This document shows positions 14,882 through 47,061 of a DNA stretch of 64,000 nucleotides, in pieces. The stretch's first letter is position 1. Each line of letters opens with the position of its first letter. A program made the translations under genes and the position numbers. The DNA lies in contig CAJFCJ010000011.1 in the NCBI GenBank assembly GCA_904063045.1, positions 1 through 64,000 on the forward strand, read 5' to 3'. Source of the stretch: Dimorphilus gyrociliatus. Taxonomy: Eukaryota; Animalia; Annelida. The notes beneath the pieces are model-generated. The model searched no databases, was not told where the DNA came from, and saw nothing but the letters and a program-made list of their open reading frames with translations.

Positions 14882-15414
14882 GATTTTCATTTTTTTCTCA
14901 ACTAAGAAAAAACGTGCAAAAGAAGAAAAAGAAGAAAGAACGTTTTTTAACTAAATTGCAAACATATTTATTGATTTATGTTTACTTTTTTTATAAAAAT
15001 CAAATGTCATAAACAAAAAAAAACAACAAATTTCATACGCTAACAATTATTATAGGCCAGAGGAAAATAACGGTTAATTTGGGGTTTTTAGACAAAAAAC
15101 ATATTTTCATTAGGAATTTTCCCACAGTAGAGACAATTTGAAATTAGTTAATAAAATTTGTTAATTAACTAGTTATATCCTGTAATTTTTAAAAATTCCA
15201 GAATTGAGAGATATTTTTTAATAGTTTAGAATTTATATTCTTGTCATTTCGCGTGCATTTTATCGAAGGTTAGTTGAATATTAATTATAATACTTTTGTG
15301 TAACCTATTTATTTATTTGTTTTTCCTTTTTATACAAGTTTTATCCGCTAATTTATTATTATCTAGACATCTGAAATACTGAAAAAGAAATATAAAGTCA
15401 GCTTGGATAATAAA

Positions 15415-17123
15415 ATGAACTCGAAAAGTAAATTTAGAATTAAGAGACCGAATTTTAACAGTTTATCAGCTTTTGGCAAGACTATCAGGAACTTGTCGAT
15501 AAATAGCAGATGGTTTGATAACTACTACTTGGAATACCGAAAAAGTACACTGATCAATTATAAATGTCCTAAAAAGACGGAATTAGACTTAAAAACTGAT
15601 TTGAAACATCTAACTACGGATCCTAACACTTCTATGGAAAATATATCGAAAATACCTAATAATAAGCAAAGTCATTTACTTTCTAGGTCAGATTACACAG
15701 AGACTGTAAGAACGAATAACAACGATTTATCACAAACATGCAATCTACCTATACGACAAGAATTTAGAACGTCACCGTTGAATAATCCAAAAAGTCATTC
15801 TTTCTTCAACAATGCCAACATTTCCTATGAATCTCAGTCTTCTTCAAGTGCCATAAGCAAACACTGTAGCGAAAAAGAGTTTGGCAGAATGTGCACAGAG
15901 TTGCTCAATACATCTCTTAAGGAAACACCAAAAAGTAAAGACCGTAGAACCTTTGTCAAGACTCCTTCTACAGCGACTAGGAATAGTTGGAACAGGAGAG
16001 ACAATACACTTGATTCAGATGAATTACAGCAGGAAATTGAGAATCCAGCATGTCTTTCATCGTCGAAAAGGTACGACGATGATTTTCTAAACACTGATGA
16101 GAGCATTATGGTAGTTGCATCATCGCCAAATGCAATGAAAACAAAATGCGAAACAAAAACCTCTCTGAACAAATTTCCAAGGTCTTTAAATTTCGATTCG
16201 CTAGATGAAACATCCATCAAACATAGACGTTGTGAAGTTCGTTTGGAGAACTTGAATGAGAAACAGTTACAAAAGTATACCGTGAATTACGAAAATTCTC
16301 ATGATGATAGTTTCCAACGCAAGCGAGAATCTCTTAGTTCACCTCTCTTCACTAGTTATCGAGTTCGAGTTCGTATTTCTACAAATAGTTTTGCCTTTGA
16401 ATCATAAAATGTCGTTTATTTTCTTTTTCACAGAAGAATTCGGGTAAACTAAGAAAGAGTTCAGCAGCCATTAAAGGTGTTCATGCCGAGACTATGTACA
16501 GAAAGGTGATTGAAGATGACGCCATGGATACCACCAGCTCTGAGGATGAAAGTTTTAATGATGAGAATGATAAAGATAAAAAAAGACTTACTCGTCGAAG
16601 ACACCGAAAATTTTCCTCTATTTTCAAATGCTGTCCACATAATTGTTACGAAAGTCTAGAACCTTCCGCTCAGAGAAATCAGTTTGATATTTACTACTCC
16701 AAAAGCCCTAGCGAACAGATTCAACACATTCTGAAATACTTAACTCTTGATGAAGATAATGAGCCTATCTTTGAAATTCAAGAAAACTATTTCTGCAATC
16801 CCTTCATTGCAAACTTATTTAAAGTTCCGCTAGATTGGCTGGAAAGAGTTATTGAAAAGAATAATCCGTGTGGAGAGTTTACAGCGAAAACATGGCTGGA
16901 ATCTGACGAGTACGAAGCACTTCAGAACTTTTGCTACATCAAGGGTATAAGAAGCAAGAACTTTCCATATTTAAAGAAAGTTTTTGGAGGTGTATCTGGT
17001 TTATACGCAAGTTACTGCTACTTTTTTCAAAATAATCATAACAGAAAGCCGAAAATTTCTAAACAAGCTTTCTACAAGACATTCCTTCAATATTTATCAG
17101 AAAAGGAAGTCGATATTGTATAA
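15415..17123 (+). CDS. Hypothetical two-exon protein of about 540 aa; Ser-rich N-terminus, Cys/HTH-like C-terminal region
   Basis: ATG 15415; the ORFs 15403-16407 and 16494-17123 are joined in phase 0 by a donor cga|gttcg near 16362-16368 and the acceptor ttttcacag| at 16433. Confidence 0.7.
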
Positions 17124-18158: not shown

Positions 18159-21100
18159 ATGATAAAATCACGGAGAATACGTAAAAGTCCTAACGAGATT
18201 GAAAGACTTTTAAATGAAGAACGTCAAAAACGTAGAAAACAGAGATTACTCCAGGTTATTGCCTCTATTAAGTCATACTTCTGGTCTAATTATGTTTTAA
18301 ACCAACAGGTCAGAAATCAGGATAAACAATTTGCAACTAAAATCAGGCAAGCAGTAAAGAATGAGAAAGAAAGACAACTCCAATTATTGGCAAAGAGTGT
18401 GGAAGTAAGTATGCAACCTTTTCATTATTTTAATTTAGCTTAAGATGGTATAAACTAAACGAACAAATCGAAAATGTAGCTTATCATAAAATTAGCTACC
18501 TTTGATATTTGTGGTTATATATGTATTATTAAATCGGCTCCCTGTGAAACCATATAGATTGAATTCACTTTGGAAAAAGCTGAAAAGTTACGCAGGTTAC
18601 AAGAAGAATATGAAGATTCTTTACAGTACGTTGGAGATGCACAAAAGACAGCCTTATACCAAGTAAATATTAATTGCTGTTTATTTGATGTCAAGGTAAA
18701 AGGCTTTTTAAAAATCTTTCAGCCTGATAATAGCTTGAAAAATCAACAAGTAAAGTTAGAGCAAGCTTGGAAAGCTGAAAAAAGATATGTAGCAGCTTTA
18801 GAGAAGTTGAGAACACAAAAAGAGGAGACTGAAGAGGAGAAGACAAGACATATTCAAGCAAGGTAATTATAAGTTTGCTCTCCTAACATAGAATTTTTAT
18901 AAATAATTTGTAAATTTTAGGCAAATGGCTCTAGAAGTGGAAAGAAGTAGAGCAAAAGAAATCGCATCATTACCCCCACCAGTAAATGATAAGGCTCAGG
19001 ACCTTTTCGACAAAAGTTGTACTCTAAACTTGTTTGATTTTCATAATTGTAACCTAATTTCTTTTCTTTAATAGATACTACGAAGCGTGTTCAGTCTACT
19101 GATCGAAACGCCTTTGTTACTACATACTACCATTTAGATGGAAAAGTTTACGCTGATAAAGCGGAAAAGGACGAAGAAGTAAGTGTTTTAAGCAAGTTAA
19201 TTGTTATGGTACTAATTCTAACGTTTAAAGGAGATGAATGCTAGGGAAGCAGCCGAACTAGAAATGGATAGATTAGATCATATTTCCAAGTCTCAAAAAC
19301 GTGAAAAATTTGAGAGGATGGAAAAAGCTGATCTACGCCATAAAGAGGCATTAAAGAAGGAAATAATTAAGAAGGAATATAGTAGTCTGCTTAAAGACTT
19401 ATCTAATCTACAGGTTCATTTATTTCATGTACTTGGAACATTTATCTATTAAATTGTTCTATATTAGAAATTGGACGCAACAAGAAGATCACAAGCTTTA
19501 GAAAAGTTACCAAAAAGGATATTTTTAGCTTCAAAACTTGATGAACAAAACGAGGAAAATCGTCAAAGAAATATAGAAAAAGCTTTAGAAAAAGAATTTA
19601 TGCAGGCAACGGGTAGAGGATTATTAAATAAATACGCTATATTTTTAACTTTTAATATATTTTCAACAATAGATCATCTAGGAGATTTAAGTCTTTTTAG
19701 ACAAAATGAACCTCCATCGTCTCCCACTGAGCAAACTAGTCAATTGTCATACGGTAATCCAGTCTCTGATCATTTAACAACTCCTGAGCCAGCCAAGCCA
19801 ATGTCGAGAATTAACGTTAGGTAATAATAGATAGAAATTTTAACGGAACTATACTTAAATAATGATTTTTTTTTTTAAATTTTTAGAAGTTCCTTATCGG
19901 ACATAACGAATGATGAAGAACAAGCCGCTGAAGCCCATAGACCAGCCGCCTTATCTAAATTATTATCAAGAATTCAATGTCAAAGGCAAAATGTTAGTAC
20001 TACTAGTGAAAGCGAAGTTGAATCTCAAGCTGGTTATATTGGACAAGGTTCGCTTACAGACTCTCTTTAAAGAGAAATAATATAAATTTTTTTGTCAATG
20101 TATGCACAGAGCCCCAATCAATCAATGATTTATCACTCTCTGAATATACACTGAGGAGTCAAGTCATGTCTGATAATGAAATTTCGGACAAAGGTGTAAT
20201 TATACCCGAGCGTGAGGTTGTTTCTATTCCATATGCAAAAGAAGAGGAAGATAACGAATCGGAGAGGAGTGATTCTGTTCAATTATTGGTAAGATCTTTA
20301 ATAATTAGAGTTTACATTCTAAAGATATCATGTTTTATTTAGAAAGGACCACCTCCACCTACAACAGGAAAGACCAGCCTTGAAGAGAATCTTGCTGAAT
20401 TTAATTCGCTGCGAGAACAAAATTTAAGAATCATTGATGACACAAAAGAAAGACAAACCTTACTCGAGTAAGTTACTTGACTGTTTTGAGTGGATATTTT
20501 ATAGTGTCTATAAATGTGAAATTTTTAAATAGTAAGGAACGTTTCGCTTTGGAGAAACAATTGAAGGAGATTCAAGAAAAGAAGCAGGTTTTAGAAAAAA
20601 TGCTGTCATCTAGCGTAAATAGCACATCATCGTCAAAAGGTTCCTCTAGATCGTCATCAAGCATTTCGCTAAAAATTCCTAAAAGAGCAGATACACCTGA
20701 CTCTATTTCATCGAAATCTTCGTCTCTTGTTGAGAAATTGGCTCGAGTTGAGGAACTAAGGCAAAGAGCTGAACTTGAACACTCACGAATACAGAATTCG
20801 AGATCGGCTGGTTTCGAGGAAAATATAAGCAAAATAGATGAGATACTAGCAAAGATTCCAACAGTCGATGATAGAATAGAAAAAGCTGGCAGAACATTGG
20901 GAAAATTTGAAGATTTAACTACAAGTCTTCATAGTTTACAACTCTCTGAGACTGATAATAGAGATAGTATTGCTGCGAGAGAGTCAGACGTTTCAGCCGT
21001 TCTGTTAAGACCTCCAAGAGTAGGCACCAGTATCACTTCAGGAAGCAGTATTTCTATTCCAGAGGCATTTGCCTATGAATCATCAGAAAATAGCTTGAAG

Positions 21101-23489
21101 CTAGGCAAAGATCATGATTTTTTCACAAAACTTCAGAGCAGAGAAAGTTCAAACGTTTCGAGCAATTATGAAAAATTCGTAAAATTAGAGAACCACGATC
21201 CCAGCAAATCGTCTTCGAGAACGGATCTTGAGGCAGGAGGAAACGAAATAGAGGAAAAATATTTTACTGCCTTGAATTTTACCCAAAGAAATAATGGGGA
21301 TAAAACTGAGACTTCTGTAAACGACGTTTGTAATAGGGAAGAAGAAGAGTTTATGCCATTAGAGAATGAATATCAAAGTTTACAAGAGCAAATAGAATCA
21401 AAGAATTCCACTGCTCTCTTTGAGGAAGGAATTAGAAAAAGTTCATCCATTCTATCAAATAAATCTGATGACGTATTAGAAAAATCAGATTCGGGTTCTG
21501 TCAAGTCAGCTAAAAAGCGTCTCTTCGATACTAGTAACCCCTCAAATGAACATCAGCAACCAGTAAGGAGGCAAGACTTTTCGTATAGTTCATCGAAAGA
21601 TGGCGGACAAAATGTGGAAGAACTAGTAGAAACTGTCGTTTCAAGGTATCAAGAAGAAAAAGCATCCGAAAGATCCACAAAAGAGCCTGAAGATAGTGCT
21701 TTAGTTTTAAGTGAATATACAATAGAGTCAACTCAATCAGTTTTGAATACTTTAGACTTTAACGAAACTCAAAGGGATACTATTGAAAGGGCTAAACAAT
21801 TACTTGATCGCGCTGAACAATATCTCGAAAGTAGAAAGCCAAGCGATAATAAAGAAGAAAGTAATTCCAAAAATAATACTAATTGGTCGGAAGAATTGAA
21901 AAATTATAAAATAACTTCCCCAGAGCGGAAAAAGTTTGCTCCGTTTGCATCAACTCCAGCAGCTTTTCAGAAAGGAGACTCAATATTGGAACTGACTGAT
22001 ATGCCATCTACAATTTTCTCTACTGAAAGTTTATCAAAAGCGCTAGAAAATAAAACAGAAAGTGAACACAGCTCAGTTGCATCAATAAGAAGCGACCGAA
22101 AACCTACTGAACACGACAAACGATCGTTCAGTGATACCTCTCCTCCGCCCTCTCCGCCCCCTTCTCCTGCTATACCGCTCGTCAAGGATACAACTAATGA
22201 TGAAGCATCGAATACACAGCAGGAAAAAGTTACTTCTGAAGATAAATTTTATCCGCTGCTATCTTTCGATAGTGATCCAACAGATGATACTGCTTCTATA
22301 AAAAATGATAATCCAAGTGATTCATCTGACTCAACAAGATACAAGGATTTTCCTGAATTATTTCACTTTCCCATTCTAACTGAATTGAAAAATACCCTAA
22401 GTATTGTAGACGACGAAGAAAGGGATAAAAGTATGCCTTTGAGCGATTCGATTCGATCTTTCATTCCGAGTGGTTTTCTAGAAGAGCAACGTTTAAGCGA
22501 TGTGCCAGAAGAGGAAGAAGTATCAGACTATTTTAAATTAACTCAAACTCCACCTTCTCAACTAAAGAATGAAGAAATTAGCAAACGCGGTATGCATTAT
22601 TTTAGTCCTTGTAGCCGTGGCGATTCTACGTTATCGTTTGAGGCCCATGAGAAAAGTATTATAAGTGATAGTTCGAAGTTTAGTAGTTCAATTTTCGGTA
22701 AGTTGAAGGTACCATTACTTATAAAAATATTAAATAAACAAATATTTCAGACTCGCCAGCAAGCCAAAGCCATAAAGATAGTCAACTATCTACGCCATCG
22801 CCTAAACAGAGGTCGTTAAAGCCAGTTGTAGAGGTTGAAGAAGACGATAAGGAAAGTTACGCAGAAAGGAAAAAGAGGCAATTAATGAAAGCTTCAGAAC
22901 AAAGAAGGGCAGAAGCCATGGAACGAGCTAGGCATAAGATGGAGAAAAAATTAAAAGAGGAAAAACAACTACACGACGACATGATGGAACGTTGGAAAGT
23001 AGGTCGGAGCGTTAACGGTAAAAATTTAAATGCCAATTCATCAAATAGTACAAATGGTAAACACTTATTAATAATATCTTATTAATATCATTAATATGTA
23101 TTGATTTATTATTGCAGAAGATAGTAGTAAAAGTGAGGAAAAACCAATTAAATCAAATCCGAAAAGTAATGAAAAGTGTAAGGAAGAACAGATGAAGAAA
23201 AGAACTCAACGGTAATGAGACATCAATAATTAATTTATGATATATTAATATTAATAAATTTGCTTCTTTTTTTGCTATTTAAGCCTTTATAGCCGATTAG
23301 AAGAAGTTAAGAAACAACAGGAAGTGAAAAATCGACAAAGTGAATATGCTCAAAATAGGGAAAGAGCTAAAGCTTATAGCAAAGTAATTCTAGTCTATTT
23401 TTTAAAACAATCTTCAGAAATAATTATTTTAATTTCTTCTATAATTGTAGAAACAACAAGAAATTAGAAAGAAAAGTACAAAGTCGTAA
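18159..23489 (+). CDS. CEP295: Centrosomal protein 295 (KIAA1731/Ana1)
   Basis: N-terminus RKSPNEIERLL...RRKQRLLQVR...KADLRHKEALK...ERSRAKEIASLPPP matches the CEP295 conserved domain; long disordered exon about 20533-22697; C-terminal ALMS motif QMKKRTQRLYSRLEEVKKQQEVKNRQSEYAQNRERAKAYSK; stop ends at 23489. Confidence 0.88.
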
Positions 23490-26628: not shown

Positions 26629-33053
<6,425 letters not shown>

Positions 33054-41360: not shown

Positions 41361-44204
41361 ATGGCTGCGCTGGAAGCCGAACCTCCAGAACGATTCTATT
41401 TGGAACGTATCCTTTGATAATACTTTTTTTGATGGTCTAGAAATGCATTAATTATTAAATGATCATTTGAGATCAAAAATAATTTCTTAAATTATATCTT
41501 TCTAAACTTAATTTAGTTTTCTTGAAGTCCGCTTTAGACTTCATAAAGTTCATCCAGCTTCTATTACCATAGTGATAATAATTAGAAGTAACCTATCTGA
41601 CTCTTTTTTTTATACTTAATGTACAAAATATACTATTTCAGACAAACTAACACAATTCATTTGAAATTATCGTGTTTTTCAAAATTAAGTAGAAATTATG
41701 TTAAAACACTGTTTATTGTCAGTCATCCTTAACTTATCTTGAAATTAGGAAGGGAAATTTTTGAGGATACAGATACCGACTTTCCTTATGAAGAAATACC
41801 TGTTGACGATGAATTTAAAACCTCTGGTAAGAATATTTTAGTTCTATTTTTCTTTTGAAGACCATGGATAGTCTAACTGTGTGTCTTAGTAGAAATCGAT
41901 GAGGATCTCGAAACAGCAGTTAGAACAATCAGGGAAGCTGAGGAGGATTGTAAAGCTAAGGTTTAACATTTCACACACAACTCTTTTTTAATATAAACAA
42001 AATTCTATCTTAACTAATCTTAGGAGCAAAGAGATGCTGAGAGAGCATCAGCAACGCTAGTAGAAACTGCAGAAGTAACAGATGATTTTGTCCGTAATTT
42101 CCTAGTTAAGATGAAAATGGAAAAAACCTTAGATTGCTTTCAAACGGAATGGTATGAAAATTTACAGAAAGGTCGACTCAATATGGAAGATGTTGGATTA
42201 GTTCCAGATGTTTATTTAAAAAACCAGAAATTAGATCATGATTTGAAGCATTATAGGTCTCAAATGGAAAAATATAAGGAAGCAGCTCTGTAAATATTAT
42301 TTTAATTCTTTTTTTTCTTTTTACTATCAACAAAATATTTATGTTTATTTTAGGCAAGCAAAAGAAACTTATATCAAACTGAGAAAAGAGAGAGATTATC
42401 ATAGGATGCATCATAAAAGAGTTGTACAAGAGAAGAATAAATTAATTCAGGATATTAAAAAGTATTGAATATTGTTTTTATGTTATTATCTATTAAAATG
42501 AAGAATTTTCTTACGAAATCATTTAGATTGAAGCATCATTACGCGTCTTATGAACCAACTTTGAAACAACTCAAAAGTAAATATGAATCTGCGATGAAAG
42601 AGAAAATGTTAACTAGATTAGAAAGAGATAGAGCAGTTGGACAAGTTTGTTTTATACTTTCGTCAATAATATATAGATGATTTATTAAATATGTTCTTTT
42701 ATTGTTATTATTATTACAGATTCAGGGATTACAATCCACTATTCGGACAATGGAAACCTGCAGAACTGGAAGTTCTAGAGATCAAGAAAGTGAAGGATTA
42801 AGACCTGTACAGAGAGGTAGTGCTGTGCTAATGGTTGATGAAAAGGGTCGTGGACCTACTCAAAGAAGTTTGCTGAAGGAAAGAAGCAGCGCCAATAATG
42901 ATGGTGAAACAACTCAATTGAGACCAGATATTAATCAGAGATCCCAATTCCCAATCGACACAAGAGTCAATCCACTTTTGAACGAAGTTCGACAATCGGC
43001 CCACACTAAGAGAGCAGGTGGTTTAAGACTATCTCATAGTTTCCAAGGACATTCTCACGCTATTAGCGGGTAAGACCTATCTAGTTTTTACATGTTCCAG
43101 ACTCATCAATATCATCATTGAAACTTTTACCGCAGGGTCAAAATGCATCCAAAGAAACAAATCCTAGCAACTGCTAGTGACGATTCCACATGGAAATTAT
43201 TTACAGTACCAGGAGGAGAACTAATTATGACGGGAGAAGGGCATCAAGATTGGGTTTCTGACTGCGATTTTCATCCTGAGTAAGAGAAAAATCGGAATGT
43301 AAATTCTTTAATTCTTATTGAATTCTTTTTATCTTGCAGTGGCACGAAATTAGTAACGGGAAGTGGAGATACAACAGTAAAAATATGGGATTTTACGAAG
43401 GGTAGTTGTATGCATACTTTTATGGAGCACAAGCACGCAGTTTGGGGAACAACTTGGCATTCCTGCGGAGATTTTATTGCAACATGTTCTATGGATAATA
43501 CATCAAAAATTTGGGATATTAACTCTCTAGAATGTAGACATACTTTACGAGGACACGCTGATTCTGTTAATAGCATAGAGTTTTTAGCCTACTCTAATAC
43601 TTTGTTAACGGCTTCAGCTGACAAGACAATTTCTCTATGGGATGCTAGAACGGTAAATATAGATGATAAATTCATAATTGTAATTATACTTTCTTGTCTC
43701 CAATAGGCAATATGTGCACAAACATTCTACGGTCATATGCACTCTGTTAACAGTGCTTGTTTCAACTTAAAGGTTAGTTTTAAATCATCCATGCCCAATT
43801 AGATAAATAACGATTATTTTCGCTCAAAATAGGGAGATACTGTGGCATCTTGCGACAGCTATGGAGTTGTTAAACTTTGGGACGTAAGAGCTGTTGCACC
43901 AATGCTTACTATTGATGTAGGCCCGCATCCAAGTAATAAAGTCCAGTTCGATCCTTCCTCTTCCGTTCTTGCTATTGCTTGCAACGATTCAATCGTTAGG
44001 ATTTACGAAGTCGCAACAGGAAAGGTATGCATCAGTTTCTTATTTCTTATAATATGCTTGACAGATCGATTGATATTCTCTTATATAATATAGATATCTG
44101 AATTAATTGGCCATACTGATGCCGTCCAGTGCTTGACATTCGACAGAGCAGGAGAGTTCTTAGTGACTGGAGGAAGCGACTTGAACGTTCGAATTTGGAC
44201 CTAA
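41361..44204 (+). CDS. SPAG16: Sperm-associated antigen 16 (PF20, central-apparatus WD40 protein)
   Basis: FYLE...YEEIPVDD, DDFVRNFLVKMKMEKTLDCFQTEWYE, KERDYHRMHHKRVVQEKNKL, HYASYEPT, WD40 repeats; TAA at 44202-44204. Confidence 0.95.
41407..41748 (+). other. U12-type (minor spliceosome) GT-AG intron, SPAG16 intron 1
   Basis: 5' splice site GTATCCTTT at 41407; branch point TCCTTAAC at 41726-41733; AG at 41747-41748; the phase-1 join keeps the frame (FYLE-R-REIFED). Confidence 0.9.
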
Positions 44205-44634
44205 AACAATAAGAATCATAATAAAAAAAATAGGACTCGTCTTTCTATCTTATTTAATTGTTTTTAAAAGATTTTATCCCAATGAACAAATTTATGTTAA
44301 TTATACGATAAAAAACAACAAAAAGTGCAACTATTTGTCTTATCTTTTCTCGATTATTTCGTAAAAATAAATTTTTTAAAAAAGTTCATCTTACACACTA
44401 GATAGCGCTATTTGTTTGTGTATATACCTTATTATTAGAGAGAAGTTTGCACTATCTTTCTACATAGTAATCTCCTTCTATAAAAGAGTGTTACTTTTTT
44501 AATCTAAGAAGTCTAAGAATAAGTTCTCTTATACATCAAATAGTTTAAATTTTGTTGTCTATTTACCAAGATCAACATTCTAAGAACCTATTTTCGAAAT
44601 TGTACTTTATTATCAACGAGTTCGTTAATTACGT

Positions 44635-46679
44635 ATGGATAACTCATTCGAAAATTTCTTTTCAAGTCACATAAATCCTTATTACTTTAATACTCATGAA
44701 ATCGAAAGAAGGGAAATATTAGTTGAAAAATTGAATAACTATCTAAAATCATTTATGGAATCAAAAGTTAGCTTAGAAACAGATATTTTATATAAAGGGA
44801 GGAAATAATCGATTAAAATCTATATTTATAGGGTTACGGAATTGAAGATTTATTTCCAGTAAGATTGGAATGCTTTGGATCATTTGCCCTTAAAATATGT
44901 ACAAAAGGTTATATATTTTTAGAATGACTAGAAACTGAAAATAACCTTTAATGTTTGTTAATAGATACTGATGTTGATCTGGCAGCTATAGTACCACAAG
45001 GTCTCGACAAACTAAATGATGATAATTTTTTTGATGAATTTGCTGATTATCTTAAAATACACGAAACTCTATTATTAGATGATTTTCGGGTTTGTTTAAT
45101 GTTACATTTATATATAAAGAATGTGTAGAAAAAATAGAGCAAATATTTTTCAGGTCGTTAAGAAGGCAAGAGTTCCAATCATCAAACTGTGGATAGAGGG
45201 AATAGAAGTAACTATAAATAGTTTATAATAACAACTCATTTGCCAATTTTAGAATCATTTTACAAAGAAAATTAACATTTTATAGATTGACATTACTCTT
45301 GTTCGACCGTCCAATGACGTTCTTTATAAAGACTTGGGCTCTCGTAAGTATATTACTGGAATGAATGAAACTTCGATTAAAAGTATTTCCGGTAGGCTAT
45401 TGTCATATGCCTCTGCATTTTTTTAACTACACAGTTTAATTAATTCTTGCAAAGGTCTTCGAGATTTAAATTGTATAATGAAATTCTTGGAAGCTAACGA
45501 TATTAATAAGAAAATGTTTATAAACTTTAACGCTACCATTAAATTTTGGGCTATAAGTTTATTATATTTTCTTTATTTAGGCCTAAAATTACTAATATAG
45601 AATTTGTTTTTTTTTTGTTTTAGAAAAGGGCGTTTATAGTACAGTTCTAGGATTTTTCTCTGGGGCGTCACTAATCCTAATGGTTCTCTTTGTACTTAAA
45701 GAGAATAACACTGTTACCGATTTGAAAACTTATATACAATTATTCTTTTCCACCTTTGCGAAATGGTTATATTTAAATGAGAATTTTAAATAGTTATGAT
45801 CATTATTCTATCTTCTTAAAGGAATTGGAAGATTCCACTAACTTTGGAGAATCCTTATAATGATCCGCCTGATTTTATAAAAAATTTTTCTGAAATGATT
45901 ATTCATACTTTGTCTAGTCCGAGGAAGAATTCAATTAATTCTAGCAAATCATCTTCGGCCGCAATTAGGAAAGTTTTGTCAGAAAGTCATCAAACTTCCG
46001 AGATCGATGAAGGATTATTCGAAAAGAAAAATTGGATTGATGAATACAAGTTATAAGAACAATTTTTCTGTCATTTTCAATTCATTTATCTTCATTTTCA
46101 GTCATTTTATAACCATAACTGCAATCTTTGAGACGAAACATCCGGATGACAAAACCACCAAGCATTTAGATGATTGGTAAAGTATAGGATCTTGTCGTTT
46201 GTTTTAATCTTAACTACTTTTATTAATAGGGCAGGATTTATTAGGTCAAGAATATTAAGATTTTCAATTGAACTTGAAAATATGAAATATGATGATAAAG
46301 AGATTTTTAGCATTGTTCAGCCAATACTTAACAACGATAGGGAGATGTTTATTACGTATGTTTTTATTAAGACCAGCCTATAAAATTTAGTTGTTGATTT
46401 TTGTAGGTCTGACAGCCGTGTTTGGCTATTAGGTCTGGAATTTACTTGTAATTTTCAAATGAATCATTTGAATTTATCCCAGCCTACAAGAGCCTTTACT
46501 TGCGAATGTAAGCGATTCTTATTTTTTTTATGCTAAATTTAATTAAACCTATAATTTATACTTTTTTAATTGTAGTAAAACAATTAGCTACTGAAAGAGA
46601 AATATATAAATCTGGAATGAAAGTTAAAGTAGGATACTCGAATCGAAATAAATTGAACAGCCTAGGAATCTTTGAATAA
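44635..46679 (+). CDS. Divergent canonical-type poly(A) polymerase (PAPOLA/Pap1 family), 12 exons, 456 aa
   Basis: Exons 44635-44766, 44832-44907, 44965-45089, 45154-45207, 45286-45391, 45455-45556, 45624-45765, 45822-46049, 46102-46176, 46230-46355, 46407-46507, 46576-46679 (1371 nt, all GT-AG, open frame). Motifs: FGSFALKICTKDTDVDL, ARVPIIKLWIEGIEIDI, TIKFWAIKKGVYSTVLGFFSG, KWNWKIP, WAGFIRSRI, VWLLGLEF. Confidence 0.9.
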
Positions 46680-46752: not shown

Positions 46753-47061
46753 TTAAATTTTAGCTGGGAAAGAACCGTTATCTCTTTGTTCATCCCACTT
46801 GGCTGTCCATTCATTAGGGCAGAGTGATTGATAAACTCTCTTGAAATATTCACATGGTTCATAGTCTTCGCCCTTGATTTTGTGACAACGATGGTAGTCC
46901 ACGTAATTTTGCCAGCAATTCCTTGTTAGAAAAATAGTTCATTTGAATAAAAGAGAAACTTTTTTACAATAATTTTCATATCCTTACTTAGTTTGGTTCT
47001 GGTTGGGGAATCGGGCGTCAAATGGAGCTGTCTTTATTTCAATAGCCTCGGAGTCCGACAT
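46753..47061 (-). CDS. COX6B1: Cytochrome c oxidase subunit 6B
   Basis: [80 protein letters not shown]; one CDS intron; probable 5'UTR intron up to about 47438. Confidence 0.97.

Follow-up and report, generated by a model that had tools for sequence, protein, structure and literature searches.

A transcribed, highly divergent gene of the canonical poly(A) polymerase family is masked by a SPAG16 gene model in Dimorphilus gyrociliatus

Canonical poly(A) polymerases (PAPs) rank among the most conserved mRNA-processing enzymes. A reading of the bare DNA letters of one Dimorphilus gyrociliatus contig (the sequence-only reading) had nonetheless proposed a PAP gene of unusual divergence in this miniature annelid. 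The locus raises two questions: whether it is a real gene of the canonical PAP family, and what kind of protein a copy so far removed from its relatives would be. The stretch examined, called the window throughout, is the first 64 kb of contig CAJFCJ010000011.1 (GCA_904063045.1).

The gene model was rebuilt from the sequence. It lies on the + strand at 44635-46679 and has 12 exons separated by 11 introns, all GT-AG, with successive lengths of 65, 57, 64, 78, 63, 67, 56, 52, 53, 51, and 68 nt. When the exons are joined in silico as a frame check, the spliced coding sequence is 1371 nt long, or 456 codons plus a TAA stop. At 28% GC about 8% of random codons are stops, and an open frame of 456 codons is not expected by chance. 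The rebuilt model thus reproduces the 12 exons, the 11 GT-AG introns of 51-78 nt and the open 456-codon frame proposed earlier. These intron lengths agree with the median intron of 66 bp reported for the D. gyrociliatus genome, which is described as conservative and slow-evolving (PMC7854359). The features of the locus and its immediate surroundings are as follows, with residue numbers given as yeast Pap1 equivalents.

44202-44204, + strand: stop codon TAA of SPAG16, with AATAAA then at 44220 and 44366
44417-44634, + strand: 5' UTR of the PAP gene, running straight into exon 1 on the transcript contig
44635-44766, + strand: exon 1, with the start ATG; aligns to the helix ahead of the catalytic core and has no YGxTxPIS
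44832-44907, + strand: exon 2, FGS motif, equivalent to Y87/G88/S89
44965-45089, + strand: exon 3, catalytic Asp residues of the DxD motif, equivalent to D100 and D102
45154-45207, + strand: exon 4, VPIIK strand, V141-K145
45286-45391, + strand: exon 5, third catalytic Asp, equivalent to D154; ends in SIS(G), with Ser at the N189 position
45455-45556, + strand: exon 6, IKFW, with the K215 equivalent retained
45624-45765, + strand: exon 7, start of the central domain; Y224 retained, N226 is Thr, G232 is Ser, V234 is Ala, and the WAMLVARxCQLYPN helix is replaced
45822-46049, + strand: exon 8, remainder of the central domain; MPIITPAYP degenerate, with M300, T304, and P308 retained
46102-46176, + strand: exon 9, junction of the central and RNA-binding domains
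46230-46355, + strand: exon 10, RNA-binding (RRM-like) domain
46407-46507, + strand: exon 11, RNA-binding domain, with the conserved GL (467-468) retained
46576-46679, + strand: exon 12, end of the RNA-binding domain, with the stop TAA at 46677-46679
46753-46902, - strand: last exon of the convergent gene COX6B (DgyrCDS8288), on the same transcript-assembly contig as the PAP gene

Transcript evidence came from the assembled contigs of one public run (2017), in which a single contig spans the PAP junctions. This contig of 1903 nt is 100% identical to the genome, with 0 mismatches, and omits precisely all 11 predicted introns. Every junction of the earlier model, for which an RNA check had been called for, is therefore borne out. 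Among 31-letter words sampled from the PAP locus, 49% are present in the same run, which fits a spliced form since exon-internal words make up about half of the total by count. The contig begins at 44417 and includes a 5' UTR of 218 nt that is unspliced and has no upstream ATG. An in-frame TAA is found at 44626-44628, 9 nt ahead of the PAP ATG. At its other end the contig merges the PAP gene with COX6B, so its depth is uninformative on expression level. The stop codons of COX6B and the PAP gene are 73 nt apart, and since one contig runs through both genes, their 3' ends probably overlap. An AATAAA (46647-46652) also falls inside the PAP coding sequence, in its final 11 codons.

To place the protein, we assembled a reference set of 23 canonical PAPs with full-length open reading frames, taken from 115 metagenome stretches that match a degenerate DNA pattern for WAMLVARxCQLYPN. 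Six of the 23 were scanned with Pfam, and in all six PAP_NTPase, PAP_central, and PAP_RNA-bind are present (E = 1e-85 to 1e-9). The gene model was scored against the 23-PAP profile exon by exon and not at full length. Eleven of the 12 exons match, and the matched profile positions rise with exon order (48 concordant versus 7 discordant pairs). The summed positive exon score is 25.1 bits, compared with a mean of 0.16 and a maximum of 8.9 in 200 residue shuffles. Collinearity with canonical PAPs, claimed by eye in the sequence-only reading, is thus borne out by the order of the profile matches and by a score well above that of any shuffle. In a fragment alignment the exons span the whole PAP core, from the pre-catalytic helix through to where the RNA-binding domain ends, with exons 7-12 covering the canonical central and RNA-binding parts.

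Searches with single exons returned little. In an exon-by-exon Pfam scan of these short, divergent exons none passed a curated threshold, the sole PAP match being a weak one of exon 7 to PAP_central (E = 0.062; 13.5 bits with a cut-off of 27.1). A PDB sequence search with exons 5 and 7 matched no PAP chain. With exon 8 as query, a search of the ESM Atlas gave no usable match and a word search confined to proteins of 41-131 aa found nothing. An exhaustive search of 50%-identity representatives with exon 7 returned an unrelated repeat protein only and is uninformative on relatives. This last search also missed the 1027-aa product annotated at the locus; if that product includes exon 7, a 50%-identity representative set can hide the second halves of fused models. 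Together, the transcript contig and the profile alignment support the locus as a real, transcribed, and spliced canonical-family PAP gene.

Is the encoded protein still an enzyme? Residues were numbered after yeast Pap1 through one reference open reading frame (L104) that aligns 1:1 to yeast Pap1 PDB chains, and after bovine PAP through another (L102) aligned to structure 1Q78. In the alignment to canonical PAPs, the D. gyrociliatus protein has F at the position of Y87 and retains G88, S89, D100, D102, D154, K215, Y224, and T304 (yeast numbering). CFGSF, DTDVD, and EIDI align to the FGS turn and to D100, D102, and D154, while IKFW and VYS align to K215 and Y224 (bovine K228 and Y237), which are nucleotide contacts. 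The motifs quoted in the sequence-only reading (FGSF, DTDVD, EIDI, TIKFW, GVYS, SISG, YST, and FSG) are all found in the translation.

Other positions of the active site are changed. N189 is replaced by Ser (bovine N202), N226 by Thr (bovine N239), G232 by Ser, and V234 by Ala, so that the GG at yeast 232-233 reads SG. For N189, N226, and G232 alike, at least 22 of the 23 references have the canonical residue, and N189 and N226 are implicated in domain closure and ATP recognition in yeast Pap1. The substitutions of N189 by Ser and N226 by Thr and the change of LGG to FSG had first been mapped by eye. Alignment to real canonical PAPs with PDB-anchored numbering gives the same assignments, and conserved Asn at the N189 and N226 equivalents, which would have spoken against the earlier reading, was not what we found. 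The segments RVTDEIL, WAMLVARxCQLYPN, and most of MPIITPAYP are degenerate. Exon residues cover 97 near-invariant PAP columns, of which about 44 are retained. Identity to the references is 20-28% over some 340 aligned columns, animal-like PAPs being nearest. The references themselves are fungal, animal-like, and protist-like PAPs with pairwise identities of at least 36% (median 46%). By this measure the D. gyrociliatus protein is more divergent than the entire spread of canonical PAPs sampled.

The reading that we favor, and consider probable, is that the locus encodes a separate, transcribed, spliced, and extremely divergent PAP paralogue of 456 residues that is probably active and probably non-nuclear. 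Its three predicted domains are the nucleotidyltransferase, central, and RRM-like RNA-binding domains. The protein most likely remains a nucleotidyltransferase that acts on RNA 3' ends, as the catalytic and triphosphate-contact residues persist even though over half of the positions that are otherwise invariant have been replaced. The retained residues are those predicted to bind metal and to contact the triphosphate and ribose, and the surrounding scaffold has drifted, a distribution that may be read as selection for catalysis. With the loss of N189, N226, and G232 among others, activity would not be assured.

For the same reason a pseudo-enzyme remains a serious rival, although we judge it unlikely. 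Such a protein would retain the fold of a PAP together with its Asp triad, would have lost polymerization, and would serve as a non-catalytic binder of RNA or protein. The replacement of more than half of the near-invariant positions, including V234, RVTDEIL, and the WAMLVARxCQLYPN helix as well as the three residues just named, speaks for this rival. Against it, the three metal-binding Asp residues, the FGS turn, K215, Y224, and T304 have all been retained amid diverged surroundings, which is the pattern expected from selection on catalysis.

The two ends of the protein bear on where an active paralogue would work. The N-terminal YG(I/V)TxPIS motif is absent, the protein beginning at about yeast residue 24 in the fragment alignment. 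The in-frame stop upstream of the ATG and the lack of a further 5' exon in the transcript contig indicate that the motif is truly missing from this gene. At the other end, the last residue corresponds roughly to bovine residue 500, which is the end of the RNA-binding domain and lies ahead of the KKKK of the bovine nuclear localization signal (NLS) region. Alignment to bovine PAP reveals neither an NLS nor a Ser/Thr-rich regulatory tail in the 456-aa protein, and the earlier claim that both are lacking holds, with the stop coinciding with the end of the RNA-binding domain. In metazoan PAPs the tail and NLS bring the enzyme into the nucleus and under regulation. Since both are missing here, the favored paralogue, like plant PAPS3 and mammalian TPAP to which it is analogous, would most likely act outside CPSF-coupled nuclear polyadenylation. 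A cytoplasmic or germline role and a relaxed nucleotide specificity, as had been suggested, are speculation.

A bolder version of this idea, which we regard as rather improbable, is that in D. gyrociliatus the canonical PAP fold has radiated into a small family that includes a conventional enzyme. The divergent copy would then be a cytoplasmic RNA-tailing enzyme in which the changes of the pocket (N226T, N189S, G232S, and V234A) alter the choice of nucleotide or the range of substrates. If true, it would be a counterpart, derived from canonical PAPs, of the non-canonical TENT enzymes.

The favored reading places the protein as a specialized paralogue alongside a conventional PAP. We consider it very improbable that the protein is instead the sole functional canonical PAP of D. 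gyrociliatus, a housekeeping enzyme that happens to evolve unusually fast. No other D. gyrociliatus PAP was retrieved, by searches that were incapable of showing one. The genome is slow-evolving (PMC7854359), and the neighboring gene SEC23 (DgyrCDS8291, matched by the window's exon at 100% identity) is 72-76% identical to its counterparts in other annelids and molluscs, whereas the identity of the PAP protein to any PAP does not exceed 28%. The conservation of SEC23 among spiralians is in line with the strongly conserved neighbors noted before. A sole housekeeping enzyme would also have to do without the NLS, the tail, and the conserved N-terminal motif. Taken together, the slow-evolving genome, the conserved neighbors, and the absence of every feature that links metazoan PAPs to the nucleus favor a paralogue.

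Several further observations concern the neighborhood. D. gyrociliatus has a second SEC23 gene, DgyrCDS2702, whose product shows 75% identity to the exon of SEC23 in the window. Two Logan contigs, L117 (1-13162, SRR23372228) and L118 (1-4311, SRR23372216), encode a SEC23 with 87% identity and have the gene order EML-PAF1-SEC23-Ig, as in the window; they presumably come from a related dinophilid. Both contigs end before the PAP locus, the syntenic one stopping about 3 kb past SEC23, and a search with COX6B found no fragment from the SRR23372228/SRR23372216 dinophilid. Within the window, the open reading frames at 20477-22819 (780 aa), 15403-16407 (334 aa), and 28277-29128 (283 aa) match no Pfam family at E ≤ 0.001.

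The PAP gene is not missing from the public annotation; it is masked there in a chimeric model. NCBI annotates one gene at 41361-46679, with a 1027-aa product assigned to WD40 families, that spans both the flagellar gene SPAG16 and the PAP locus. The identity of the upstream part as SPAG16, as had been claimed, is confirmed, since it matches the SPAG16 PDB chain 9ijj_Q (E = 7e-54) and Chlamydomonas Pf20 (E = 3e-42) in a single stretch each. That the annotation is correct, and SPAG16 and PAP form a single gene for a 1027-aa WD40-PAP fusion protein as NCBI calls it, is hardly credible: SPAG16 is closed by a TAA of its own (44202-44204), with AATAAA signals beyond it, and so ends before the PAP gene begins, another TAA stands in frame just ahead of the PAP ATG, and the transcript contig starts in an unspliced 5' UTR with no junction into SPAG16 exons, 44300-44386 being covered by no contig at all. 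We regard the fusion model as almost certainly artefactual. What is new here is the recognition that the public annotation fuses the PAP gene to SPAG16. The chimera should be split, as it currently conceals the PAP gene from orthology and expression analyses.

With the two genes separated, the favored paralogue can be set beside other polymerases. A transcribed copy at no more than 28% identity that keeps the catalytic and triphosphate-contact residues would show, as an experiment of nature, what the active site of a PAP can do without. The protein is, in addition, a candidate for a novel, specialized tailing activity in an animal whose genome evolves slowly.

Like the canonical nuclear PAPs (yeast Pap1, bovine and human PAPOLA, and PAPOLG; PF20750, PF04928, and PF04926), the D. 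gyrociliatus protein has the three domains in the same order. The equivalents of the FGS turn, D100/D102/D154, K215, Y224, and T304 are common to both, and the protein ends where the crystallized canonical core ends (bovine residue ~500). It differs from the nuclear enzymes in its identity of at most 28%, in N189S, N226T, G232S, and V234A, and in the degenerate WAMLVARxCQLYPN and MPIITPAYP segments. It is also without the YGxTxPIS motif, the NLS, and the Ser/Thr-rich tail of those enzymes.

With the non-canonical PAPs, or TENTs (GLD-2, MTPAP, and TUT1), the protein shares a nucleotidyltransferase core of the Pol-beta type, and TENTs act outside CPSF. GLD-2, MTPAP, and TUT1 carry a PAP-associated domain and are without PAP_central or RRM-like C-terminal domains. 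In the D. gyrociliatus gene, by contrast, exons 7-12 match the central and RNA-binding domains of canonical PAPs.

PAPS3 and TPAP/PAPOLB are paralogues of the canonical family that, like the D. gyrociliatus protein, are without the C-terminal regulatory and NLS extension. TPAP stays close in sequence to PAPOLA. It is an intron-less copy (PMC2778134), unlike the D. gyrociliatus gene, whose 11 introns and much greater divergence set it apart. Plant PAPS3 is short, tail-less, cytoplasmic, and expressed in pollen, and resembles mouse TPAP (PMC2778134). The tail-less likeness to PAPS3 and TPAP suggests that the D. gyrociliatus protein may work outside the nucleus, and by this analogy PAPS3 would be its nearest precedent. 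Tail-less paralogues of canonical PAPs are already known, and the D. gyrociliatus protein would be an unusually divergent one.
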